This document shows positions 1,159-52,165 of a stretch of DNA of 64,000 nt, in pieces. Position 1 is the first letter of the stretch. Each line of letters starts with the position of its first letter. The DNA is taken from the sequence record NC_061442.1. One strand, 5' to 3'. The position numbers and the translations under genes were made by a program. The notes under the pieces are model-generated. The model was not told the origin of the DNA, made no database searches, and saw only the letters and a list, made by a program, of their open reading frames with translations.

Positions 1159-1980
1159 TTAATCTCCTACTGCCGTGTACCAGAAGTCCCAACCGACAGT
1201 GTTAGTGCCGCTGGACTTAATGGTAAAGCCACCCAACAGGGCGTTCTCGTTCATAGCACTGGTACCGTCCAAGTTATACAACGTATACGTCTTAGCTTGG
1301 TTGGTGGCCGCGTTAACGAACGTGATCTGCAAGCTGATGCAGCGGTTAATGAACGGACTGTTGAAGATAACGTGCAGAGTATCAGTTGTTGATTTGTTCA
1401 CGACACGGGCCATGTTGTGAGTAAAGCCCGTATTCATGTTTCGATTACTACCAACCCAAGCATTAGGTACTACCGCACCAGTTACTGGGTCAAGCGCTTG
1501 CGACACGCGATATTCATCAATCGCAGCATCGCGTCCAGGACTACCTGTAGGTCCTGTTGCACCCGTGGGTCCTACTGCACCAGTGTTACCTGTTGCACCT
1601 ACAGGACCCGTATTACCGGTAGGGCCGTTACGACCACGAGGGCCGCGAGGGCCCGGGCAGCCGTCATCACCATCACGTCCATCACGACCGTTAGTGCCTG
1701 ACAGACCGCGCAAGCCTTCTTTGCCCTGCTTACCTTCACGTCCAGACTTGAGCTGGTCAGCAGTAGGCAAACCAATAACGTTTGTCTGACTGCCGTCTGG
1801 CCAGATGATAGAAAGCGTACCGGTAGTAGTATCGAACTGAGCACCCTGTGAGCCTGGAATCTTTGATGCTTCTGCAGGGTCGATGAATGCAACCGCTGTC
1901 GAAGTTTTCTTACCCAGCACTTTACCAACGGGGTCAGTGCCGCCGTCAATAAGTGATGGGTTAATTCGTGTTAAAGACAT
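1159..1980 (-). CDS. Collagen-like fibre protein (24 Gly-X-Y triplets) with C-terminal globular head
   Basis: Uninterrupted GXY run GREGKQ...GSPGRD; N-terminal beta module shared with the three collagens at 7155-9730; AGGAG RBS. Confidence 0.9.
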   Translation of the reverse strand: MSLTRINPSLIDGGTDPVGKVLGKKTSTAVAFIDPAEASKIPGSQGAQFDTTTGTLSIIWPDGSQTNVIGLPTADQLKSGREGKQGKEGLRGLSGTNGRDGRDGDDGCPGPRGPRGRNGPTGNTGPVGATGNTGAVGPTGATGPTGSPGRDAAIDEYRVSQALDPVTGAVVPNAWVGSNRNMNTGFTHNMARVVNKSTTDTLHVIFNSPFINRCISLQITFVNAATNQAKTYTLYNLDGTSAMNENALLGGFTIKSSGTNTVGWDFWYTAVGD

Positions 1981-7154: not shown

Positions 7155-7646
7155 TTATGGGCGAACCCAAATAGCGCCGGCTTCCACCTCATTGTCGATA
7201 GCAGGGTCCGTATCTTGTACGAACACCATTACCTTACCGGGATTACCTGGAGAACCAGTAGGACCGGTCGGGCCCGTAGGACCAGCTGGGCCGCGGTTGC
7301 CTACATAGCCTTGCTTACCTTGCAGACCATCTGAGCCTCTAGGCCCAGGGCAACCGTCAGTACCACGACGTCCATCACCGCCCATAAGACCGTCAAGACC
7401 ATCACGACCCGACGGACCTACGCCACCAACAGGACCGTAGCCGATGCTGTGAATAGTAGGCAGCCCTGCGATCTGTATCTTACCAATCGTAGGGATGTTC
7501 AGTGCGAGTACACCAGTGAGTTGGTCGAATGAACCGCTGAGTGTGCTATAGTCTTCTTCGGTGTCTACTGTAACACCGCCTTGAGTGGCTTTCACAGGAC
7601 CAGAAGCATTGGTCTTGAGAAGCGCAATATCAACTTTTTCTACCAT
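7155..7646 (-). CDS. Collagen-like protein (23 Gly-X-Y triplets)
   Basis: GPVGGV...GNPGKV run; C-terminal VFVQDTDP...GAIWVRP motif; AAGGAG RBS. Confidence 0.9.
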   Translation of the reverse strand: MVEKVDIALLKTNASGPVKATQGGVTVDTEEDYSTLSGSFDQLTGVLALNIPTIGKIQIAGLPTIHSIGYGPVGGVGPSGRDGLDGLMGGDGRRGTDGCPGPRGSDGLQGKQGYVGNRGPAGPTGPTGPTGSPGNPGKVMVFVQDTDPAIDNEVEAGAIWVRP

Positions 7647-7655
7647 GATTACTCC

Positions 7656-8288
7656 TTACGGCCAGGTAGTGCCTTGATCTTTAGTAGGGTCGACCCAGAT
7701 GGTGCCTGCGGCAACTGCTCCTGGCTGGGTAGCACTAACGATGATAGACAGACGACCCGCAGGACCCGCTGCACCGGTAGGACCCGTAGGGCCTGTAGAA
7801 CCAGTGTTGCCTGTAGGTCCAGTTCCTCCTCTAGGGCCGGTAGGTCCGGTAGGTCCCATAGGGCCAGTGCGTCCATCAGGTCCGGTAGGTCCTACAGGGC
7901 CAGGTAGACCATCACGCCCATCTGGGCCAGGAATGCCTTGCTCTCCGTCGGGACCTATATTACCATCACACCCCTGTTCGCCAGGACTACCATCTCGACC
8001 GTCACGCCCATCTTTACCGTCAGCGCCAGTCTCACCTCTACCGCCTTGACGCCCTTCAGGGATATCAGAAGCAGTAGGGAAGCCTTGCACTTTGACAGTC
8101 TGACCATTAGCGAACTTGAGAGTCAAGATTCCGCTAGTCGCATCGAACGACGAGTCACCTGTTAGTTCTGACGGTACCTCTGAGTCATCAGGACTGACCG
8201 TCAGTGTGCCCTTAGAGGCACGAACGGCAGTAGGCGTAGAAGACGCACCAGCTTGAATGAGGCCGGTACTTACTTTAATCAGACCCAT
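7656..8288 (-). CDS. Collagen-like protein (34 Gly-X-Y triplets)
   Basis: GRQGGR...GPAGRL run; C-terminal IIVSATQP...GTIWVDP motif; TAATG translational coupling to the upstream gene. Confidence 0.9.
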
Positions 8289-9730
8289 TACGTTTTCTCC
8301 GCTTTCGCAACAATATCCGTATTATGCACAAGCACATCACCAACGAAGTAACAGTCGAATGGGTCAACGTCGATATCGACTGTCTGCACTTGTTCGTCTA
8401 CACGACGCATCTCATATACAGAGATAGGTCCTTTGCGACCAAGAACAGTTTGACCTGCTTGCACATCACGCGCAGGAACATAGCGCCATACGATATCATC
8501 GTAAATCAAAACAGGATGTTCGTGCGTGAACTTCTGTCCATTAATCACATAGTAATGATCTTCTTGGCCGCGCACGAGAGCTTTAACAGTCGCGTATACG
8601 GTTGTGCCTTTTATGCTAGGCGAAGACCATCTGCGAAACTCTTTTGGCTGATTCGAATAGCCAAGTAACGCATCACCAACACGTAAGTCTTCAACTGCTT
8701 TCGGACCAACGATAGTGTTAACGACAGAGCCGTACACGATACAGCCGGATGTTGCAGTGTTAGTAGGGTTACGAGCCACAACAGTAAGCGCAGACCTAAC
8801 AGTAACAGTCGGACGCGATGTTTGACCCATATCAGTTACCAGACAGCTAATGGTGCCTTTGATTGTACGATCAGCACCTAAGCCAAGTCTCAGGTAGAAG
8901 TTAACAATGCAGGTGCTTGTCTCAATAGCATCAAGAGTCACACCCTCTGTGGTAGTGATAGTCCATTTATACTTATACGGACCGACACCACCACGCGCAT
9001 TGACAGGTAAATATGCCAGCGACGTAAACACATCAGAACCCTGCACTGTACGTTGACCAACCATGTACAGGCTAGAGACTGACGCAGCAAGAGGCGTTAT
9101 TGTAGGCAGAGGAGGAGCAGGAGTAACGTTCGTCGTAGGGTACAACCACACGAATACTTTGCTATCGAGAGGCTGCGTAGACGAAAGAACTGCTGTAGTT
9201 ATAGGAGCAGGTCCGGTAGCACCAGTAGCTCCAGCTATACAGCTAGGACCATCATTTCCTTTAGGACCTATTGGCCCTGTAGGACCGGTAGCACCGTCTG
9301 GCCCTGTAGGACCGTCTGGGCCCATGCGACCAGTATCTCCATCAGGGCCGTCTTCACCGTCACGTCCCGGCTCTCCAGCTGGCCCCGTCTTCCCTCTATT
9401 ACCTACACCACCCGGACAACCCTGTCTGCCTGTCTCTCCGTCTCGACCATCACGGCCAGGACGACCGGGAGAGCCTGGGGCGCCACGACGCCCAGGCTTC
9501 CCTTCACCAAATACTGATACAGTAGGTAGACCGGGGACGTTAACTACATCCCCGTTCTTTTTGATGAAGACTAACACACCGGTCTTGCTGTTAAATCTTA
9601 CGCTGGCGATCTGTGTTAGTGTTGCCACATCGGAGTTTTCAAATTGAACACCTCCGTCAACGCCGACTAAGGATTTACCTTCGTCATTCTGCGTTGTTTC
9701 GACTTGCGAAAGTTTTAACTGTGTTGTCAT
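8288..9730 (-). CDS. Collagen-like fibre protein with Ig-like domain and C-terminal Hint domain
   Basis: 29 GXY triplets, then CIA and 3 more; beta-sandwich ([11 protein letters not shown]); Hint domain at the C-terminus. Confidence 0.9.
8321..8743 (-). other. Hint (intein-like/BIL) autoprocessing domain, about 141 aa
   Basis: Starts at Cys (G-CIVYGS...VEDLRVGD), has the block-B motif FTHEHP and ends VLVHN followed by Thr; too short to contain a homing endonuclease. Confidence 0.85.
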
Positions 9731-23484: not shown

Positions 23485-23932
23485 ACGAGTCGATAATGTC
23501 CAGGGCTTGCGATACTATCGGTCGAAGTTTCTTATCGACTTTAGTAAGCGCCTTATCCGCTTTAAACCATTTGCGTTCGCGTGTCATGGCTTCGTCGTAT
23601 TCAGTCAACATGGTTTTGACCTTCATGACGAACCATTCAACGTGTTGCTCACGGCCGGTCTTGCCTTTGACGTAGCGCATGATATCTACGAAGTCTTTAG
23701 GCTTACCGAGAACACCAGCTTCTTCCATTGCTTCTTTAAGCGCACTGTCGAGCGCAGTCATTCCCTTCTCCACGCCGCCTTTTGGGAGACCCCAGTTGCC
23801 AGCGTGTGTGGTGCGAATGAGCAAGATCTCAATCGTACCGTCCTTTTTCTTTCTATATGGGATGACGCCAGACTGCTTACGAGGCTTCTTCTCGAATGGC
23901 AGTTTGGCTGACAATGACACGCGAATCTTCAT
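23474..23932 (-). CDS. Nudix hydrolase
   Basis: Nudix box WGLPKGGVEKGMTALDSALKEAMEEAGV; SGVIPYR...EILLI resembles Ap4A/diphosphoinositol-type Nudix enzymes. Confidence 0.92.
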   Translation of the reverse strand: MKIRVSLSAKLPFEKKPRKQSGVIPYRKKKDGTIEILLIRTTHAGNWGLPKGGVEKGMTALDSALKEAMEEAGVLGKPKDFVDIMRYVKGKTGREQHVEWFVMKVKTMLTEYDEAMTRERKWFKADKALTKVDKKLRPIVSQALDIIDSYGL

Positions 23933-24432
23933 AGGTAATCAAGCCCTCTCGGAAGGTCAACATCCCACGAGCCAGCGTTGTCTTTCCACAGACCCTGATG
24001 TTGCAACTCCTTATATGCGTCATAAAGAGAAACACGAGCCTGTACAGAGAGTTCGTTGACACCCGCAGCACCTAAGCTGTATGTATACATGCAGCCTGGG
24101 AAGTATTGTGTACGATTGGCTTCATGTGTGTCAAACACAATCTGTCCCTCACTGTTAGAAATAACAGCGTGGGATGCCATACCACCTTGACCGAGAATGA
24201 CGATATCATAGTCGGGGTGCTGTTTGTAGCAGCGTTGAACAAACTCGGCGCAGTCTGCAAATGGTCGAGCTACAGCAGCAGCGCGATTGCAGTTGAACTG
24301 GGCAGCAGACTCAGACAGAGAACGTGCGCCAGTCAGATTCATAGCCGAGGCAAAGATAAGAGTTGCGAGCGATTCAGGCTCAACGGCAGTGGGGAAAAAC
24401 TTTGTGCCCCACGCTTGTGATAGCGAAAGCAT
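23929..24432 (-). CDS. Hypothetical protein (167 aa)
   Basis: AAGGAG RBS; ATGA-type overlap with the Nudix gene. Confidence 0.7.
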   Translation of the reverse strand: MLSLSQAWGTKFFPTAVEPESLATLIFASAMNLTGARSLSESAAQFNCNRAAAVARPFADCAEFVQRCYKQHPDYDIVILGQGGMASHAVISNSEGQIVFDTHEANRTQYFPGCMYTYSLGAAGVNELSVQARVSLYDAYKELQHQGLWKDNAGSWDVDLPRGLDYL

Positions 24433-24461
24433 GGACGTCTCCTTATACGATAGTCTCAGCT

Positions 24462-24469
24462 AAATTAGT
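24462..24469 (-). promoter_or_regulatory. Putative late promoter variant ACTAATTT
   Basis: One mismatch to GCTAATTT; lies in a 41-nt intergenic gap upstream of an RBS. Confidence 0.45.
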
Positions 24470-24473
24470 GTGC

Positions 24474-24761
24474 TTAGTCTTCTGGACAGATAAGCACCTG
24501 ACGACCCTGTTGATAATAGCTGTCGGGTGCTCGCCCTACAACGATAGCGCGTTTGCACATAAATGCAGGCTTACGCAGAGCGACATTGCAGCCTCCGTGA
24601 GATAACACGGCAAGCGCTTCTGCTTTACAGGGACCAGTCAGACATAGCATATGCGAATAGAAAGGCTTCTGCGCCTTCTTCATCGTGCGTGATATTAAGG
24701 CACGAATACGCTCCGCTTGTTGTGTGGAAGGTGCATGACCGCAGTACACAGCGAAGTTCAT
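24474..24761 (-). CDS. Hypothetical protein (95 aa)
   Basis: AAGGA RBS, ATG start; fills the gap. Confidence 0.6.
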   Translation of the reverse strand: MNFAVYCGHAPSTQQAERIRALISRTMKKAQKPFYSHMLCLTGPCKAEALAVLSHGGCNVALRKPAFMCKRAIVVGRAPDSYYQQGRQVLICPED

Positions 24762-24763
24762 AA

Positions 24764-25459
24764 TCAGTCCTTAACAGTCAGAAGACCTGCGTAAACACCG
24801 AAGCGATCAGTGAGTGTAGCGAGAGCGCCATGCACGTCACCGTCAGAATAACTAAGGCACACAGCATTAGCATTCGACACAGATACGTTGTTCGCGCCTT
24901 CCTCGTAAAGGAAGATGGTAGCCCCGTCATGCTTACGTCGGTCAGTGTAGAATAGACCGTACGAAGTCCACGAATTAGTGCCGCTTTCCATAACATACAC
25001 AGATGCCTCAAAGAACAGGGATTCGAGATCGAGAGCATCGGTATCAATGAAGTTACGGTCTTCACTGTCAGACACTACCACGTCGAGAGTAATGAGGTCA
25101 ATTGCTTCTGGCTTGGAGCGTAACCAGATCTTCATGCAACTGTCTAAGTAGTCGGCGATAGCACAACAAATACAGCTACGGTTGTTCGGGTCACGTTCTG
25201 CGCGAGGTATAGCAGTCAGAACACGGTCGCTTATTTTCCATGAGATGTGGTCTGTTTCAAGGCGCCCGTTATGATACTCATAATCCTCGTCTTTGATCAC
25301 AAACAGGTTGGTACGCTGCATTGCAATGTTAGACAGTACGTGCTTGGCGCGGTTAATCAAGTCAGGTGGGAATTGAATCATAACACGCGCGGAAACGACA
25401 CGAGGAACGCCTTTTTCGATGTAGGCGAAGTTCATCGTGCGATGTAAAAGAGAACGCAT
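24764..25459 (-). CDS. Hypothetical protein (231 aa)
   Basis: TAAGGA RBS; contiguous with neighbouring genes. Confidence 0.7.
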   Translation of the reverse strand: MRSLLHRTMNFAYIEKGVPRVVSARVMIQFPPDLINRAKHVLSNIAMQRTNLFVIKDEDYEYHNGRLETDHISWKISDRVLTAIPRAERDPNNRSCICCAIADYLDSCMKIWLRSKPEAIDLITLDVVVSDSEDRNFIDTDALDLESLFFEASVYVMESGTNSWTSYGLFYTDRRKHDGATIFLYEEGANNVSVSNANAVCLSYSDGDVHGALATLTDRFGVYAGLLTVKD

Positions 25460-43015: not shown

Positions 43016-44152
43016 TTAAACTTTTCTGCTATCAATGTCAGCTTGCGGAATATAGCGATTTTCGAAGTATTTATTGACCACTTCTACTCCGTTTAACGAG
43101 TAAACGTTACGCATACTATCACCCCAAACCATTAGCTCTGCAAGGGTAGCGAAATGCTCCGTTGGTACGGATTTCATTGTCCTAGCATCGAGCGAATCCG
43201 GGTGGATTTTCTTACCACGAATGGCCTGTTCAAACTTCATACGGTCAACGTTTCGTATCATCGTATGGTCCACAAAGTGAGCCAATTCGTGGGTCATTGC
43301 ATGGCCGAACGATCGACTATTATAGCCACCAAACAAATCAACCAACTGCCGTGGACTCATTGAAATTACACCATACAGGAATCCTGACACGGTATAAGTC
43401 ATTATATGAGAACCACCAACGTCATTGCCCTGTTTAACGATACCTACGTATAAACGCTTGAATGGCAGAGGCACGTTAAGACCTATGCCAGGCATGACGT
43501 TCTCCTGAATGTCTTTCAGTACATAATCAGGAGGGCTGACGCCTTCTAAGTGAATACGTCTACCGCCAATAAGCAAGTCATCGGCACCTAATACTTCAAG
43601 ATGCACATTGCCACACTTAGGTATCTTTTGGACAGCGTAGTTATTTGGAGTACCGCCCGGATAAGTAGCGTTAGCATACACCAGAGCTTTCTTATCGCCA
43701 AACATAGGCATGTCTTGCAGGCGACGCGCTCTTGCTCTCAGGGACTCTGGAGTGTCGTTACCATCCGGTGCAGGCGTACCGGCATCTTCCGGTTCTGGTG
43801 GCGGTGCAGGCTGTTCCGGTTCAGGTTTCGCTTTGACTGGCACAGGCTTTGGCTTAGGCGCAGTAGCTATTTTCTTCTTCTCCTCGTAAGGAGTGAAGTC
43901 AAAGTCCGGCTTGAAGAGGGCGTCAGGCTTAGCAGTGAATGGGCGACTCTGTGCAACTACCTTGTCACCGTCATCTCCACTGATTTCATAAGCCATGTCG
44001 TATTTAGGATGGGCTATGTAGTACAGGTCGTTGCTTACCTTGAGCAGACCCACGACCTCACGGGTATGCAGATGCACCCCGTTTGAGATCGCTACGTCTG
44101 GTCCCAGATAACGATAGTACGGATAGTCCGATATGACTAGACTTCCCGCCAT
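43016..44152 (-). CDS. Zincin-like metallopeptidase with the shared N-terminal beta-domain
   Basis: Probable start at TAATG (44152); MTHELAHFVDH (HExxH) and downstream TEHFA; Pro/Lys-rich linker. Confidence 0.7.
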   Translation of the reverse strand: MAGSLVISDYPYYRYLGPDVAISNGVHLHTREVVGLLKVSNDLYYIAHPKYDMAYEISGDDGDKVVAQSRPFTAKPDALFKPDFDFTPYEEKKKIATAPKPKPVPVKAKPEPEQPAPPPEPEDAGTPAPDGNDTPESLRARARRLQDMPMFGDKKALVYANATYPGGTPNNYAVQKIPKCGNVHLEVLGADDLLIGGRRIHLEGVSPPDYVLKDIQENVMPGIGLNVPLPFKRLYVGIVKQGNDVGGSHIMTYTVSGFLYGVISMSPRQLVDLFGGYNSRSFGHAMTHELAHFVDHTMIRNVDRMKFEQAIRGKKIHPDSLDARTMKSVPTEHFATLAELMVWGDSMRNVYSLNGVEVVNKYFENRYIPQADIDSRKV

Positions 44153-44931
44153 TACGCCATCCGCATAAGGTGTTCTTTGTACGTGGCAGCACATGCGAAT
44201 GCCGGATCATCGACCGAGCTACATTCGAAGCCAGTCAACATCTTGCAATCACGATATACCAGACGGCCGGTGCGACCATCAAGGTACGTTGGCTTGTTGA
44301 ATGCAGTATGCGAACAGAAGTTACGATGACGAGGAGTAACCAACTGGCCACAGATGCTGCACTTGTAGGCTTTGTACGTTGTGCCTTTAGAGTACGTGTT
44401 AAGCTCGCCGCTAAGGATGCGATCACAACGTTCTTCGCAGCGTGTACGGTCAAACGCCAGCAGCAGAGTCAGACGCGCATGATTACCGCGGAAGTTCTGG
44501 AGCTTTGACAGGTTGCTGTCGAAGATCATACCCATTGCTTGGCGGTAATCTTTGTTGTTGTGCTCGATGAACGTAGGCTTACCGATGAACGTTTGATAAG
44601 CAAGACGTCCTTGGTCAGGGTTAAACGTCAACCACTCTTCCAGACTAAATGCGTCACCATTCGTGTTAGGCAGCTCAGTGATGTTTACAGGCACAGGCAC
44701 AATAACATAATCACGAATGTTGCGTGACGTGTTATACTGCTCGGCTGCTTTCGACAGCCACACGTTTACGTCCAGATTGAATGAGCCTGTTTGAATGCCA
44801 AAACGCGAAGGGTCAACACGAATAGACTTAGCTGTTTGGCTAACATCTTCTTTGTGCATATCAATCGCGCCTAGTCCAACGAGGCCCATGTCCGAGGTAT
44901 CAAATGACTCGGAGCGAATGGACTTGTCCAT
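44152..44931 (-). CDS. Prohead maturation protease (HK97/herpes-like serine protease) with Zn-finger insert
   Basis: TFIGKPTFIEHN, YSKG, CSICG...CSH and FECSSVDDPA motifs; start at 44931 behind GGGAGA. Confidence 0.85.
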   Translation of the reverse strand: MDKSIRSESFDTSDMGLVGLGAIDMHKEDVSQTAKSIRVDPSRFGIQTGSFNLDVNVWLSKAAEQYNTSRNIRDYVIVPVPVNITELPNTNGDAFSLEEWLTFNPDQGRLAYQTFIGKPTFIEHNNKDYRQAMGMIFDSNLSKLQNFRGNHARLTLLLAFDRTRCEERCDRILSGELNTYSKGTTYKAYKCSICGQLVTPRHRNFCSHTAFNKPTYLDGRTGRLVYRDCKMLTGFECSSVDDPAFACAATYKEHLMRMA

Positions 44932-44941
44932 CGTGTTCTCC

Positions 44942-45364
44942 CTATTGGAAATTGTTGATGTTATCTGGCCCAGCGTTTGCAAGACGCACACAACCCTCTT
45001 CAACTTGGAAGGCGTTGAGTCCGTCCATAGTGCTCAGCCAGTAACGTAAGCGTCCATCTGAAATTACTGCGTTCTCGACATAGGCAGGAACTTCTTTGCC
45101 TGAATCTTTCATCGAGGCAATGACTTCGACGCCCGGATAGAACACATCGAAGGACTTCGTACTGAATATCGGTTTAACGATATCAGACTCGGACACAGGG
45201 TGCATGGCGTAGCGACTTTGAATCATATAGATCGCTTCGTCAGCACCAATCAGAATCGAGTTGATAGTGCCACGCAATGTGCAACGAGCACTACCGTCGA
45301 GAGTACGTCCGTGGTAGAACGTAACAATATCCGCGATGTTATACGCGAAAGAGAATTGAGCCAT
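44942..45364 (-). CDS. Hypothetical protein with two small SH3/KOW-like repeats
   Basis: Probable start MAQFSF behind GAGG; YNIADIV...IYMI and FYPGVEV...RYWL halves. Confidence 0.65.
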   Translation of the reverse strand: MAQFSFAYNIADIVTFYHGRTLDGSARCTLRGTINSILIGADEAIYMIQSRYAMHPVSESDIVKPIFSTKSFDVFYPGVEVIASMKDSGKEVPAYVENAVISDGRLRYWLSTMDGLNAFQVEEGCVRLANAGPDNINNFQ

Positions 45365-45365
45365 A

Positions 45366-46241
45366 TTAACCTCGCAGCGCACCACGAGCCCATGACTTAG
45401 CGAGCGCCAGAGTCATACGGCTTGGGTTTTGCAATTTGACTTCACCCTTATGCACAGCAGTGAAAGGTTCATGCGCATTCTCTCCGCGACCAGAACGATA
45501 CGCTGCTTCATTGAAGCCGTCGAATAACGTTACGACCCAGCCTGTGGATTTGTCAGAACATTCACCACAGGCTTTGTCCCAGCTAATCTTACCGCACACA
45601 CGACCACCAGCGTTAACCGCATAGCTTACTTGCTCAGTACCTTTATACAGGTCTTGAGATTTCAGCGTTTTGAACGTCACACGCGCAGCAGACTCAGAGC
45701 GCGGCGTCATCTTCTCTTTCAGTGCTTCAATATCAAGTGAAGACCAGAAGGACTCGAACAGCGCCGCAAATTTCTGCTCAATAGGCAGGTCGATAGCGTT
45801 GATTTGTGCGATGGTACTGGAACTATCATTAAGCACACGGTTGATGAAGTAACCGCCTAGGATTACTGGCATCTGTGTGCCCTGATCTCCAGTGGTCAAG
45901 CCCGCCCGTTTCGCATACATTTCACACATACCAATAGCAAGACGTGCCAAAGTCTGGAACGTCTGCTTCTCTGTACTGTTGGCAATCTCAGTATAGATGC
46001 GGCTTGCGATTGCAGGAACTACCGTACGCTTCGCTACACTCAGAATGTCTTCTGGTGTGATTGATTGGCCGAGCTTCTTCTTAGCAGCAAGTTCGAAAGC
46101 ATTAATCAGGCTTGCTTTGTTCGCTGGTGTCAGAGACTCGCTCAACTTGATAGTTGTCTGCTCCGAGCTGTTCACCAGACTCGGCTGCTGTGGAGCCTTC
46201 AGTCTGCGAACTCCCGTCGTTTTCAATCGAGCTACTGTCAT
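45366..46241 (-). CDS. Hypothetical head-region protein (291 aa)
   Basis: AGGAAG RBS; overlaps the glycosyltransferase 3' end by 140 bp. Confidence 0.7.
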   Translation of the reverse strand: MTVARLKTTGVRRLKAPQQPSLVNSSEQTTIKLSESLTPANKASLINAFELAAKKKLGQSITPEDILSVAKRTVVPAIASRIYTEIANSTEKQTFQTLARLAIGMCEMYAKRAGLTTGDQGTQMPVILGGYFINRVLNDSSSTIAQINAIDLPIEQKFAALFESFWSSLDIEALKEKMTPRSESAARVTFKTLKSQDLYKGTEQVSYAVNAGGRVCGKISWDKACGECSDKSTGWVVTLFDGFNEAAYRSGRGENAHEPFTAVHKGEVKLQNPSRMTLALAKSWARGALRG

Positions 46242-47346
46242 TTGTTTCTTCCTGATTAGGAGCCTGTAGATATTGCAACAGGCCGGAGTTCATAATCTCC
46301 TCGTTAACATCAAGACCGCGAAGCGTAGCCAAGTTAGCGAGGTAATTGAGAGCAGGTTCTACCATACCCAGATTGCGACAGCCCCAATAGGCTAAGTCGT
46401 AGCACAGGTCTAAATTAATAGGAGTTTGGTCGAACAGGAAACTTTTTGGATTCTGCTTTGACGCTTCGATACCCTGAATAGCTTGACCAATCGCATTGAT
46501 GTTGTCACCATGACGATAGAAGATATCAGCAAGCATCGCATAGCACTCAATACGGTCTGGACGGAATGCAATAGCACGATAGCAGGCGCACACCGACTCT
46601 TGAGTGAAGCCCTGCTTGAATGTAGCTTTGGCCAGTTCGATGTTAGCCAAAGCTACATAGTCTGGCCATTTAGCTATGCCAGCCAAGCGGTCAACTTCAC
46701 GACGTGCATCTTCCAGCAGGTCTGGGCGCTCATAATAACTGACCGAGTAGCAGAGTTCACGCGCATAATAGAAACTGCAACGATCATCATGTGGATAGTC
46801 ACCAACATCCAGACCAAGCTCCAGCAGATAATTACGTGCCTTGTCGTGGTCTGGATAGTGGTCAGTTGCGAACGGCGCTTCTACTGATTTGAGTCGTTGT
46901 CCTGGCTTGCGCGATGCCAGGACTTCATGCGCACGGTACTTCCAGAAATAAGAGCGACGACGATATGCTTTCATCTGCTGGTAGTGACTGTCGCCGTTAC
47001 GCATCAGAATCCAAACAGCTTCTGCTTTCTTAATGCCTTGCGTATTGCGTAGCGCCTCAACCCAATTAGGGTCATCGAAGCGCTCGTCAATATCAAGCCA
47101 CACTACAAGGTCGTCTTCCGAGAAAGGCGTAGCGGCCATCTCACGACTCGCGCCTAGATTGCGTTCTTCTGATACATCGAACACATGATACAGGTTAGGG
47201 TGCGTGAACGCCGAAATGATGTTCGTGGTTTGGTCTTCGCTACCTGTGTCCACGATACTAATCGCATCGGCACCCGCAACGTGCTTCAACCACTCACCGA
47301 TATTCTTTTCTTCATTACGGCAGATAGCCGCTACACAGATTCTCAT
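46102..47346 (-). CDS. GT2 family glycosyltransferase with C-terminal TPR-like repeats
   Basis: ICRNEEKNI, IVDTGSEDQT, VWLDIDE (DxD), AHEVL; C-terminal helical repeats (FYYARE, ACYRAIAFRPDRIECY). Confidence 0.88.
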   Translation of the reverse strand: MRICVAAICRNEEKNIGEWLKHVAGADAISIVDTGSEDQTTNIISAFTHPNLYHVFDVSEERNLGASREMAATPFSEDDLVVWLDIDERFDDPNWVEALRNTQGIKKAEAVWILMRNGDSHYQQMKAYRRRSYFWKYRAHEVLASRKPGQRLKSVEAPFATDHYPDHDKARNYLLELGLDVGDYPHDDRCSFYYARELCYSVSYYERPDLLEDARREVDRLAGIAKWPDYVALANIELAKATFKQGFTQESVCACYRAIAFRPDRIECYAMLADIFYRHGDNINAIGQAIQGIEASKQNPKSFLFDQTPINLDLCYDLAYWGCRNLGMVEPALNYLANLATLRGLDVNEEIMNSGLLQYLQAPNQEETNDSSSIENDGSSQTEGSTAAESGEQLGADNYQVERVSDTSEQSKPD

Positions 47347-47361
47347 GTTTGCCTCATTGGG

Positions 47362-48279
47362 TTATATCAAAACGTTACCGCTATCCCACCACTGCTTACC
47401 GTAGATATCAGACACACGGTAATCAAGGATGAGAGGCTGGTCCAGGTCGACTTGCAAAATGTATCGGCCTAATGATGGACTCCACACTGTTTTCTCCTCA
47501 GTGTAAAGCCGAATCTCAAGCTCAATGTCGCCTTGTGAGTTCTTTGGTACGAACGGATGTGAATAGTCACCATCGAAACCCGCACCAAGAGAGTCGTCGA
47601 AGTATGTGTATGCTCGAACTTCTTCACCAGTATTGATGATGGTCGGCGCATATACCTGACGGTTGTAGTACGAGGTGTAGTCGGCAACAGTTGTCTGCCA
47701 GACTACACGACGCTTATAGATACGAGTCACGCCTTTGCTGTCTGTCTCTGCACGATACTGGTTGTAGTACCAGCTTATCTGTGCGAATTTTACAGGCTTC
47801 AATGGCGCTTGTCCTGATGCGTATTTCAGGAACGGCTTCGCAGTGAAACGGTGGTATGTCTTCTGCGTGTTCAATCTATACAACAGGACTTGATATGTGT
47901 ACCATTGATAAACATCAAGGGTAATCGTACCTGAGTCTGATTGCTGCGTACCGTTGGTCAAGATGTAAGAGAAACAGTCTGCACCAACGTAACCGCTGCG
48001 TGGGCTATAGAGGAACGCATCGTTGAAATAGTTCAGACGCACCGTACCAACCATAGGGTCATTGACCTTAATAGCAGAAAGGCGCCAACCCCTTTGAGCT
48101 GGCACCTTATCGAGTACACCCTCTGTAGGGCTGTGCAACGTCACTTCATCACGAGCGCCTTGTAAGATCTTTTCGAGTGTTATCTCGGTTTCACCCGAGT
48201 TACGCACTCGCACCGTAAGGTTCGGAGCTAGTGGCTTATAGTTCCGCCAGTAGTCGAACGTACAAGGCAAAGAGAGCAT
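47362..48279 (-). CDS. Virion protein with cadherin/Big-type Ig domain
   Basis: GTVRLNYFNDAFLYSPRSGYVGADCFSYILTNG...SGTITLDV. Confidence 0.7.
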   Translation of the reverse strand: MLSLPCTFDYWRNYKPLAPNLTVRVRNSGETEITLEKILQGARDEVTLHSPTEGVLDKVPAQRGWRLSAIKVNDPMVGTVRLNYFNDAFLYSPRSGYVGADCFSYILTNGTQQSDSGTITLDVYQWYTYQVLLYRLNTQKTYHRFTAKPFLKYASGQAPLKPVKFAQISWYYNQYRAETDSKGVTRIYKRRVVWQTTVADYTSYYNRQVYAPTIINTGEEVRAYTYFDDSLGAGFDGDYSHPFVPKNSQGDIELEIRLYTEEKTVWSPSLGRYILQVDLDQPLILDYRVSDIYGKQWWDSGNVLI

Positions 48280-50269: not shown

Positions 50270-52132
50270 TTAGCTGGCGATGGGGTCTTTGTTGACAGGG
50301 AAATCTTCCACCATATCGTACACGCGATTGAATAGCTTAGGTGCCATATCTTTCACATGCTCGGCATAGTCAAAGAGGTTCTGTTTACGCGCACGGTTCA
50401 CACGCACCTGACGCACTTCGTCTGGGCTGTTGGTAATATCGTACAGCGTATAGATAACGATGTTGTCGGAGGAGTTATGCGTACTCACACGAACAACCAG
50501 CCAGTCGCGTTTGAGTTTAGCATCTGCCTTGAACTGCAACACATCACCTTCTTCTGCCTCTTCGGCGCGAGCGCTTGGAGTAGATTGGTTGGCTGCTGCA
50601 ATCTTCTTAGCAGTTTCTTTCGCCTCATCTTCGGCGGCCGCAACGTCAGAGTCCTGATCTTCCTCTGCGCCAGCTTCGTCTACCGCGTCCGTAGCATCTG
50701 CGTCTGCGTCATCGTCGGACTGTTCGTCATCTTCACCTTCTGAATCAGCTCCTTCGTCGTCAGCATCGGCATCATCCACGGATTCGTCGTCGCTTCCATC
50801 GGATTCATCAGACCCATCTTCTGAATCATCAGTGTCCGGATCGCTATCGTCAGGATCTTCTTCTGCATCGGGATCTTCCTCGTCATCAGTGTCAGAGGTA
50901 TCTTCTTCCTCTTCCTTAGGCAGAGCTTCGGCAGGCTTCTTGCCTTTGACCTTAGCGCGTACTTTGGACGGCGCTACATCTTCTTCGTCGTCTTCTGGTT
51001 CGTCTATATCGGACAGATCAAGCGCAGGCTCTTCGTGGTCTTGTGAATCATCGCCACCAAACAAGGACCCGATAGAATCTTCGATGTTGAACATGTCACC
51101 TGCGAACGGGCTGCGTGATAGAACGTCTTCGAGTTTCTGCTCGTCGAAGTCCAAATCAACTTCCACTTCCACTTCCTCAATCGCATCATCCAGTTCTTCA
51201 TGCTCGATGATTTTCACACGCTTGCCCCGTTTGTCTATACCATCTTCATAGACAGTACGAACTTCTGCTTTAGGCGCCTCAATCTCACCACTCTTAACCT
51301 TGTTGCGTAGGTCACGCATCTCGGCTGCACGTTCTGCGGCAGTCTTACGCGCTTGTTTCTGGAGTTCTTTGCGCTGCTGTTTCTGCTCCAGAACCTTAGC
51401 GTTGTTGGCGAGGCGTACTGCTTCTTCCTCCTCCAGTTGAGAACGCTTGCGGTGACGACGTACCTGTTTGCGATACGCTTTGACTGTATCAACGTCAATC
51501 TCACCCTTAGGCCAATCATTGAATGGTAGGATGTTCGTGTCGTGTACAATCAGGTCGAACTGACTGTCATCCACTTTGACGTACAGGCCTTCGGTATTGA
51601 TGACTACGCCACCTTTACCTTGACGCAAGAAACGCACACCAATCATGTCGTTCTTGTAGAGCTTGATCATACCCTTACTGGTCTTCACAGGGTATTCCAT
51701 GCTAGGCACCATACGCCACTGGTAGTTATCAAAGTTGATACCATACACAGCCTCAGCCTTCACAGACTTAGGAGCGAAACGTGCGGCATCGAACTGAACA
51801 CGATTGATCTGGCGCTGCATAGTACGAGCACCAGCAGTCTTCGTGCGAGAATCACGCTGGACAACATCAGGCACTTTACGCAGCTTGGTACTACGCTCCA
51901 TAAGGAATAGACCAGTAGTCTTGTCCAGTGGGAAGTCCACATGCGGCATGTCTGCAAAGATAAGAGTGTAGCGTCCGCCATTGCGCAGCGGGAGAATGCC
52001 AAAAGTATCTCCTTCACGAATCATACGCTTATGAGTTCGTTGAGATACTTCCTTTCCGCGTGAACCTTTGTACTTCATCCACGCGTACTTCGTTACTGCA
52101 TCTTCGTGAGATGCGGACACGGAAAGTATCAT
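50270..52132 (-). CDS. Acidic putative head protein with two copies of the shared beta-domain and a C-terminal SH3-like domain
   Basis: Probable start MILSVSAS; charged coiled coil; long D/E tract; GDVLQF...DWLVVRV at the C-terminus. Confidence 0.7.
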   Translation of the reverse strand: MILSVSASHEDAVTKYAWMKYKGSRGKEVSQRTHKRMIREGDTFGILPLRNGGRYTLIFADMPHVDFPLDKTTGLFLMERSTKLRKVPDVVQRDSRTKTAGARTMQRQINRVQFDAARFAPKSVKAEAVYGINFDNYQWRMVPSMEYPVKTSKGMIKLYKNDMIGVRFLRQGKGGVVINTEGLYVKVDDSQFDLIVHDTNILPFNDWPKGEIDVDTVKAYRKQVRRHRKRSQLEEEEAVRLANNAKVLEQKQQRKELQKQARKTAAERAAEMRDLRNKVKSGEIEAPKAEVRTVYEDGIDKRGKRVKIIEHEELDDAIEEVEVEVDLDFDEQKLEDVLSRSPFAGDMFNIEDSIGSLFGGDDSQDHEEPALDLSDIDEPEDDEEDVAPSKVRAKVKGKKPAEALPKEEEEDTSDTDDEEDPDAEEDPDDSDPDTDDSEDGSDESDGSDDESVDDADADDEGADSEGEDDEQSDDDADADATDAVDEAGAEEDQDSDVAAAEDEAKETAKKIAAANQSTPSARAEEAEEGDVLQFKADAKLKRDWLVVRVSTHNSSDNIVIYTLYDITNSPDEVRQVRVNRARKQNLFDYAEHVKDMAPKLFNRVYDMVEDFPVNKDPIAS

Positions 52133-52165
52133 GTTATTGTCTCTATGTTGTACTGTCACTCGTTG

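Follow-up and report, generated by a model that had tools for sequence, protein, structure and literature searches.

SunS, ThuS and the Listeria enzyme GmaR all glycosylate polypeptides, with a helical-repeat domain thought to hold the acceptor, and GmaR is a protein O-glycosyltransferase that joins a GT2 domain to tetratricopeptide repeats (TPRs). A comparable enzyme acts on a spore collagen in Clostridioides difficile. There, SgtA (358 aa, with a GT-A domain at residues 1-260 and four TPRs), whose gene adjoins bclA3, transfers in vitro, with Mn2+, β-O-linked N-acetylglucosamine (GlcNAc) from uridine diphosphate (UDP)-GlcNAc onto Thr (and Ser) residues in peptides derived from the GPT region of BclA3; when sgtA is deleted, spores lose the immunoreactive glycoprotein bands, BclA3 among them (PMC7157674). 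The present study concerns gp143, a gene at positions 46102-47346 (minus strand) of a 64,000-nucleotide stretch of sequence record NC_061442.1, called the window below, from the Erwinia phage pEa_SNUABM_35. The best-supported reading, which we favor with modest confidence, is that gp143 may glycosylate the phage's own collagen-like fibers.

In the literature searched, the only report of phage-encoded virion glycosylation concerns mycobacteriophages, whose glycosyltransferases decorate the C-termini of their own capsid and tail-tube subunits (Freeman et al., 2023, as cited in PMC12619734). These acceptors differ from the collagen repeats proposed here. This kind of system is known from spores; for phages, our searches turned up no account of it, nor of any connection with tail fibers: none of the papers searched connects phage glycosyltransferases with collagen-like fibers, and the Dickeya, Erwinia and jumbo-phage papers among them do not discuss the gp143 gene.

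The window is 100% identical to the genome of pEa_SNUABM_35 (Alexandravirus, 261.7 kb), and a window position equals the record position minus 62,000. The product of gp143 is identical (100%) to YP_010300248.1, which RefSeq labels "beta-1,4-glycosyltransferase." The jumbo lineage concerned was named "hairy Myoviridae" in a study of a Dickeya phage and includes Y3, AD1, the JA phages, Lu11 and PaBG (PMC6143709).

Architecture and fold of gp143

The preliminary description of this DNA had recognized a GT2 enzyme with TPR-like repeats in this gene, and that architecture is borne out by profile searches and by modeling, in which confidence is expressed as the predicted local distance difference test (pLDDT):

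46102..47346, minus strand: gp143, GT2-TPR glycosyltransferase, 414 aa, PHROG 13126, the sole GT2 of the genome
46837..47346, minus strand: GT-A (GT2) catalytic domain, residues ~1-170, from Pfam, model and alignment
47086..47094, minus strand: DxD metal/nucleotide-sugar motif D85-I-D87, unchanged across 43 homologues and matched in the alignment by the D-x-D of the bacterial family
46285..46827, minus strand: TPR-like helical repeat domain, residues ~174-354, presumed to bind the acceptor protein
46105..46284, minus strand: acidic, Ser-rich, disordered C-terminal tail, residues ~355-414, pLDDT <50, variable or absent in relatives

Residues 5-113 match the Pfam GT2 family PF00535 (E 7.6e-8; 32.9 bits, cut-off 23.3; 35.2 bits in a search of the phage's own genome), for residues 233-300 the PDB matches are consensus TPR proteins, and the whole protein matches PHROG 13126 with an E value of 5e-116. 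In the alignment of 43 homologues, D33-T-G-S-x-D38, R68, D85-x-D87, H140-E141, K169 and Y193 are invariant, so that the GT-A active site is intact. Those that belong to the GT-A signature (DTGSxD, R, DxD, HE and K) have identical counterparts at the aligned positions of the bacterial family described below.

An AlphaFold (AF2) model built on this alignment (pLDDT 87, predicted template modeling score 0.80, pLDDT >90 over residues 1-165) has a GT-A domain at residues 1-165, followed from residue 174 to residue 354 by nine to ten paired helices, and a disordered tail (364-414); the acidic, Ser-rich tail is missing from the enzyme of the Dickeya JA phages. When the model was compared with the PDB by Foldseek, the best matches were ThuS and SunS (PDB 7msn, 7msk; E 7e-13 to 7e-10), extending across the GT-A domain as well as the helical repeats. 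Matches around 1e-5 were weaker and comprised TarS, TPR proteins and the TPR domains of O-GlcNAc transferases; RmlT and WrtF were also among the weaker matches. SunS and ThuS glycosylate a polypeptide held by the helical domain, but they share only 13-16% sequence identity with gp143 and act on Cys residues of small bacteriocin precursors encoded adjacently. Relatives of gp143 score 19-24 bits against the SunS family model TIGR04195, whose equivalog cut-off is 350, and gp143 itself has no NCBIfam match at E ≤ 0.001; no NCBIfam model covers its family. No glycocin-like precursor was noticed beside gp143 in the annotation or among open reading frames of at least 60 aa, a check that included no dedicated search. 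At the sequence level, the GT2 domain of GmaR is also detectable: residues 5-106 of gp143 match this flagellin O-GlcNAc transferase (PDB 22ao, E 2e-7). GmaR differs in having flagellin as its acceptor and in its anti-repressor role, neither of which is indicated for gp143.

There is no membrane segment in gp143 (maximum 19-residue Kyte-Doolittle mean, 0.79). A search of the phage genome found no GT2 besides gp143, nor any GT1-family enzyme or NAD-dependent sugar epimerase, which implies that gp143 acts alone and depends on a host nucleotide sugar as its donor. The best explanation of these features is a soluble, cytoplasmic, metal-dependent GT2 (GT-A) enzyme in which the TPR-like domain serves to recruit an acceptor protein. 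In our judgment, it is quite probable that some kind of protein is the acceptor.

Collagen genes beside relatives of gp143

Distant phage relatives of gp143 are encoded next to collagen genes. A scan of IMG/VR with the gp143 alignment yielded 74 loci, whose enzymes are 25-34% identical to gp143, fall in the same PHROG 13126 (E ~1e-112) and have the same GT2-TPR build. Collagen runs lay upstream, nearly always on the same strand, in 39 of the 43 loci for which 5 kb or more of DNA was available on that side, vs. downstream in 3 of the 56 loci with at least 5 kb on that side (nominal Fisher p 2e-19; nominal p-values given here ignore the relatedness of the loci). Collagen accounted for 5.5% of the bases upstream and for 0.14% of those downstream. 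The upstream pattern was present in every informative enzyme cluster, 18/18 at 70% identity and 4/4 at 50% identity. In the collagens near these enzymes, Thr occupied 59% of 2,799 Y positions of the Gly-X-Y (GXY) triplets.

Where such viral loci are annotated, the gene order is collagen-like tail fiber, glycosyltransferase, endolysin and terminase, and the start of the glycosyltransferase gene is often 30-200 nt from the collagen gene. The cultured Actinomycetia phage DSL-LC01 (L023:535-7077) has, in one same-strand run, two collagen genes, two further genes and the glycosyltransferase. Two further metagenomic homologues adjoin, respectively, genes for a giant fiber protein and a tail-fiber chaperone, and Mtd-type fiber genes.

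Two of these viral loci encode additional enzymes. On the viral contig L069 (3016-7283), a gene for a 406-aa collagen protein is followed by three tandem GT2-TPR paralogues of PHROG 13126, an arrangement that suggests the assembly of a glycan in successive steps or enzymes specific for different acceptors. In DSL-LC01, the two intervening genes encode a hypothetical protein and a "tryptophan halogenase," a flavoenzyme that might likewise modify collagen or else make a sugar; a UDP-galactopyranose mutase is encoded nearby.

The association was also examined in reverse. Among 117 sampled viral contigs with long collagen runs, the stored DNA of five carried a member of the glycosyltransferase family: 3 of the 19 loci with at least 60% Thr at Y, vs. 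2 of the 98 others (nominal p 0.03). The enzyme is thus nearly always found with collagen while most collagens are found without the enzyme, which is the pattern expected of an accessory modifying enzyme. This asymmetry argues against the glycosyltransferase being mere cargo in a hot-spot behind tail-fiber genes, and so does the bacterial context, in which collagen genes accompany the enzyme without any such hot-spot.

The GT2-TPR family is large (more than 8,000 sequence clusters; one source labels a member "tetratricopeptide repeat-containing glycosyltransferase"), and its bacterial homologues belong almost entirely to Bacillota. At 50 of 79 bacterial loci a collagen gene lies in the flank, mostly within 1 kb, and the collagens beside the Bacillota enzymes have 61% Thr at Y. 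The jumbo-phage and bacterial profiles align by hhalign across 341 columns covering both domains, with a probability of 100% and an E value of 2e-81.

We infer that SgtA belongs to this Bacillota family, because its size, architecture, taxon and gene context match by description. Like the members of the family of gp143, it is about 350 aa long and carries its GT-A domain at the N-terminus and its TPR repeats at the C-terminus. SgtA is a soluble enzyme that needs a divalent metal (Mn2+ > Mg2+), and gp143 retains the DxD motif. The SgtA gene adjoins that of a GXT collagen, as at the 50 Bacillota loci and at most of the distant phage loci. Its acceptor is Thr at Y of a hydroxyproline-free collagen, and pEa_SNUABM_35 encodes four collagens with Thr at Y. 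Unlike SgtA, gp143 is encoded by a phage of a Gram-negative host, has an additional acidic tail, and would have virion fibers, rather than the exosporium, as its presumed acceptors.

Collagens of the jumbo phages and a proposed role for gp143

A pattern scan of the 261.7-kb genome found collagen runs only in four genes, as the preliminary description had indicated, and all four products pass the Pfam Collagen model:

1159..1980, minus strand: gp99, collagen-like fiber protein, candidate acceptor; 24 GXY triplets, Cys at triplet 10
7155..7646, minus strand: gp103, collagen-like fiber protein, candidate acceptor; 23 triplets, Cys at triplet 10, GPT GPT GPT block
7656..8288, minus strand: gp104, collagen-like fiber protein, candidate acceptor; 34 triplets
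8288..9730, minus strand: gp105, collagen-like virion protein, candidate acceptor; 29 triplets, Pro/Thr-rich linker, Hint-like C-terminus

Each run consists of a charged zone of nine triplets, a Cys at triplet 10 and then a zone in which Thr is the commonest residue at Y. The earlier statement that these collagens have many Thr at Y holds for the second zone, where Thr fills 25 of 70 Y positions past the conserved Cys vs. 2 of 36 ahead of it (7/14 past the Cys in gp99 and 10/24 in gp104), but not for the runs as a whole, in which Thr (27 of 110 triplets) is about as frequent as Asp (26 of 110). At the C-terminus of gp105 (8321-8743, residues ~330-470) there are sub-threshold matches to the Hint families PF07591 (24.7 bits, cut-off 27.7) and PF13403.

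The two-zone organization of the collagen runs is conserved in phages of four genera, Erwinia, Yersinia, Dickeya and Pseudomonas. The runs keep their lengths of 23, 24, 29 and 34 triplets, save for one 48-triplet run in HRDY3; in 15 of 16 runs the Cys is at triplet 10, following a G[LF]PT-x6 lead-in; and Thr occupies 29% of Y positions past the Cys vs. 10% ahead of it. The four collagen domains look like a length-calibrated, disulfide-knotted fiber set.

Within the clade, each enterobacterial phage that the collection lists carries the glycosyltransferase, and its gene occupies a constant position, ~7 kb from that of the major head protein. The preliminary description had proposed examining the co-occurrence of the enzyme and the collagens in related phages. 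Both were present in 6/6 members of the clade, and both were absent in 7/7 more distant relatives:

Glycosyltransferase and collagens present: pEa_SNUABM_35, fHe-Yen9-02, JA11, Lu11, PaBG and HRDY3
Both absent, collagens searched at 10 or more triplets: Motura, PhiXhv-12, phiRSL1, BcepSauron and vB_PpuM-Aura
Both absent, collagens searched at 18 or more triplets: RHph_N46 and GR11A

Four collagen regions were resolved in pEa_SNUABM_35, fHe-Yen9-02, JA11 and HRDY3. Lu11 served as the positive control for the glycosyltransferase profile search. For RHph_N46 and GR11A the collagen pattern needed 18 triplets, which makes the negative result weaker than for the other five.

Two candidate assignments in the clade were rejected. 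An in-frame stop in the HRDY3 homologue proved to belong to the preceding gene, and the glycosyltransferase is intact. "Gene 263" of the PaBG virion proteome is an 18.9-kDa protein and not the glycosyltransferase; the numbers in that paper differ from the RefSeq tags. The records PV359490.1 and PV550095.1, of Salmonella phage Sen-NF (108 kb) and Alcaligenes phage Afa-NA1 (78 kb), gave identical glycosyltransferase matches (44% identity, E 2e-81), and the head protein of Sen-NF is 77% identical to that of the jumbo clade. Both could be incomplete or wrongly assigned assemblies of a single jumbo phage.

Every computational test that was run favored a protein-glycosylating role with collagen-like fibers as the target. 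The earlier proposal that the phage glycosylates its own fibers draws on the fold relatives, the gene linkage of distant homologues and the co-occurrence within the clade, and seems to us slightly better than evenly placed to be right; this support is comparative, not experimental. The domain architecture, the conserved catalytic residues, the homology to a collagen-linked family, the linkage in other lineages and the co-occurrence in the clade are observed, and from them we infer the acceptor in this phage, the type of linkage, the sugar and the benefit. Late in infection, gp143 would take a host-made UDP-sugar, for which UDP-GlcNAc or UDP-glucose is the obvious guess, and would O-glycosylate Thr (perhaps Ser) in the Thr-rich zone past the Cys knot of gp99, gp103, gp104 and gp105, before or during the building of the fibers into the virion. 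The sugar would stabilize a hydroxyproline-free triple helix or mask the fibers.

Several points weigh against collagen fibers as the acceptor. The collagen genes lie 37-45 kb from gp143, whose neighbors are head-morphogenesis genes, so that the gene does not adjoin that of a collagen-like acceptor as sgtA does. The collagens of the jumbo phages have only 29% Thr at Y past the Cys (~30%, and in one zone only), compared with 59-61% in those beside the other homologues. In a quick tree, the jumbo enzymes share a single long branch (~2 substitutions per site) that is sister to the viral and bacterial clades with collagen linkage, and a branch of this length makes a shift of acceptor possible. The pattern of presence and absence in the clade is one evolutionary contrast, not thirteen. 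The presence of the enzyme near only 5/117 phage collagen loci implies that collagen fibers do not need it. In addition, gp143 and SgtA are likened by description, the sequence comparison having been made only with the Bacillota family, and the literature searched contains no report of glycans on virion proteins of this clade.

More broadly, we give an even chance to the proposal that PHROG 13126 is a widespread and so far unrecognized phage virion-glycosylation system, in which SgtA-like GT2-TPR enzymes O-glycosylate Thr of Gly-X-Thr collagen-like tail fibers, including those of the "hairy" jumbo myoviruses. If so, post-translational sugar coats on receptor-binding or whisker fibers would be common in phages: such enzymes would be at work in many aquatic and gut phage lineages, and the "hairy" fibers of the jumbo phages would be glycosylated collagen. 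This would have a bearing on host recognition, virion stability and the antibody recognition of therapeutic phages, as well as on phages for the biocontrol of fire blight. It would also link the SgtA-BclA system of spores to phage biology, with phages and spore-forming bacteria sharing one solution for stabilizing or masking hydroxyproline-free collagen. The PHROG annotation "beta-1,4-glycosyltransferase; moron/AMG/host takeover" (AMG, auxiliary metabolic gene) would need revision, since databases would be misfiling such genes, and the enzyme and its substrate would offer a compact pair for the production of glycosylated recombinant collagens.

Alternative acceptors and the gp143 locus

The main rival, by virtue of the conserved position of gp143 in the head module, is that it glycosylates other virion or assembly proteins, namely gp142, gp141, prohead components, the immunoglobulin (Ig)-like protein gp144 or its own Ser-rich tail. 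We regard this as unlikely. The genes concerned are the following:

47362..48279, minus strand: gp144, Big_9 Ig-like domain, PHROG 36743, upstream neighbor, syntenic with the glycosyltransferase in enterobacterial relatives
44942..46145, minus strand: gp142 and gp141, two conserved small proteins (PHROGs 31537 and 37979) with no assigned function
44152..44931, minus strand: gp140, head maturation protease, a conserved landmark downstream of the glycosyltransferase locus

On one side, gp143 is flanked by gp144 and an NAD-dependent DNA ligase, and on the other by gp142, gp141 and the prohead protease; gp142 and gp141 separate the glycosyltransferase from the protease in all clade members examined. 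The order of ligase, glycosyltransferase, two small genes and prohead protease holds from the Erwinia phages as far as Lu11 and PaBG, despite a head-protein identity of only 46-47% in these two, and the 3' end of gp143 shares 44 nt with the annotated beginning of gp142. Both features speak for an acceptor in the head module, as do the long branch of the jumbo enzymes, which allows a changed acceptor, and the capsid and tail-tube glycosylation reported for mycobacteriophages (Freeman et al., 2023, as cited in PMC12619734). Against this, none of the neighbors is notably rich in Ser or Thr (9-16% S+T), the gene linked to the enzyme elsewhere in the family encodes a GXT collagen, and the jumbo clade retains collagens with Thr-rich zones. 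The composition of gp144 also leaves the earlier suggestion that Ser/Thr-rich Ig proteins are the target without support. As for the placement of gp143 in a structural operon, the gene does belong to an extended run of genes on one strand, most of them virion genes, but one of its neighbors is a ligase gene and the collagen genes are distant. Scans for promoters and terminators around gp143 gave counts no higher than in shuffled sequence. Two proteins with a KMPT-N domain (PF20294), at 43016-44194 and 50270-52159 (E 1.5e-29 and 3e-17), flank the stretch from ligase to protease, and one of them directly follows the prohead protease.

It is improbable that gp143 glycosylates a host protein or peptide during takeover, be it flagellin, pilin or a surface protein, as GmaR does, or a glycocin-type Cys, as do SunS and ThuS. 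Its closest solved folds are indeed glycocin S-glycosyltransferases, its N-terminal domain matches GmaR, and its PHROG category is "moron, auxiliary metabolic gene and host takeover." However, the enzyme and its relatives fall outside the NCBIfam and SunS models at the scores given above, the limited check of its surroundings revealed no glycocin-like precursor, gp143 belongs to the core late-region genes of a clade of lytic phages, and its family is linked throughout to collagen genes.

Modification of a host envelope glycan (lipopolysaccharide O-antigen, enterobacterial common antigen or capsule), which would block superinfection or aid release, is the usual reading of phage GT2 genes in the literature (PMC7029224; PMC10202952). 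The N-terminal 112 residues of gp143 weakly match PHROG 841, "GtrB-like O-antigen conversion," and TarS, RmlT and WrtF are among the weaker fold matches. Yet a lipid-carrier enzyme of the GtrB type would need a transmembrane segment, and gp143 has none; the acceptor indicated by its TPR domain and its closest folds is a protein or a peptide; and its homologues lie beside collagen genes in Gram-positive genomes and in phages of varied hosts. For a soluble TPR enzyme such as gp143, conversion of the lipopolysaccharide or O-antigen is quite improbable.

Glycosylation of a modified base of the phage DNA, as a means of evading restriction, is very improbable, in keeping with the preliminary description: GT-A-fold DNA glycosyltransferases do exist in phages and this genome has a ThyA-like gene, but the known enzymes resemble JGT and TarP, have no TPR and cluster with ThyS or 5mYOX/C5-MTase genes (bioRxiv 10.1101/2023.12.21.572611), whereas gp143, instead of a fold like that of JGT/TarP or of T4 βGT (the GT-B type), has a SunS/ThuS-like fold with TPR, which together with the collagen linkage points to proteins, and the sole ThyA-like gene lies 84 kb away and scores as an ordinary thymidylate synthase by TIGR03284 (127 bits against 108). 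This ThyA-family gene (genome positions 23851-24873, outside the window) is unusually long, at 341 aa, and thymidylate synthase models match it in two or three stretches, which suggests that it carries insertions.

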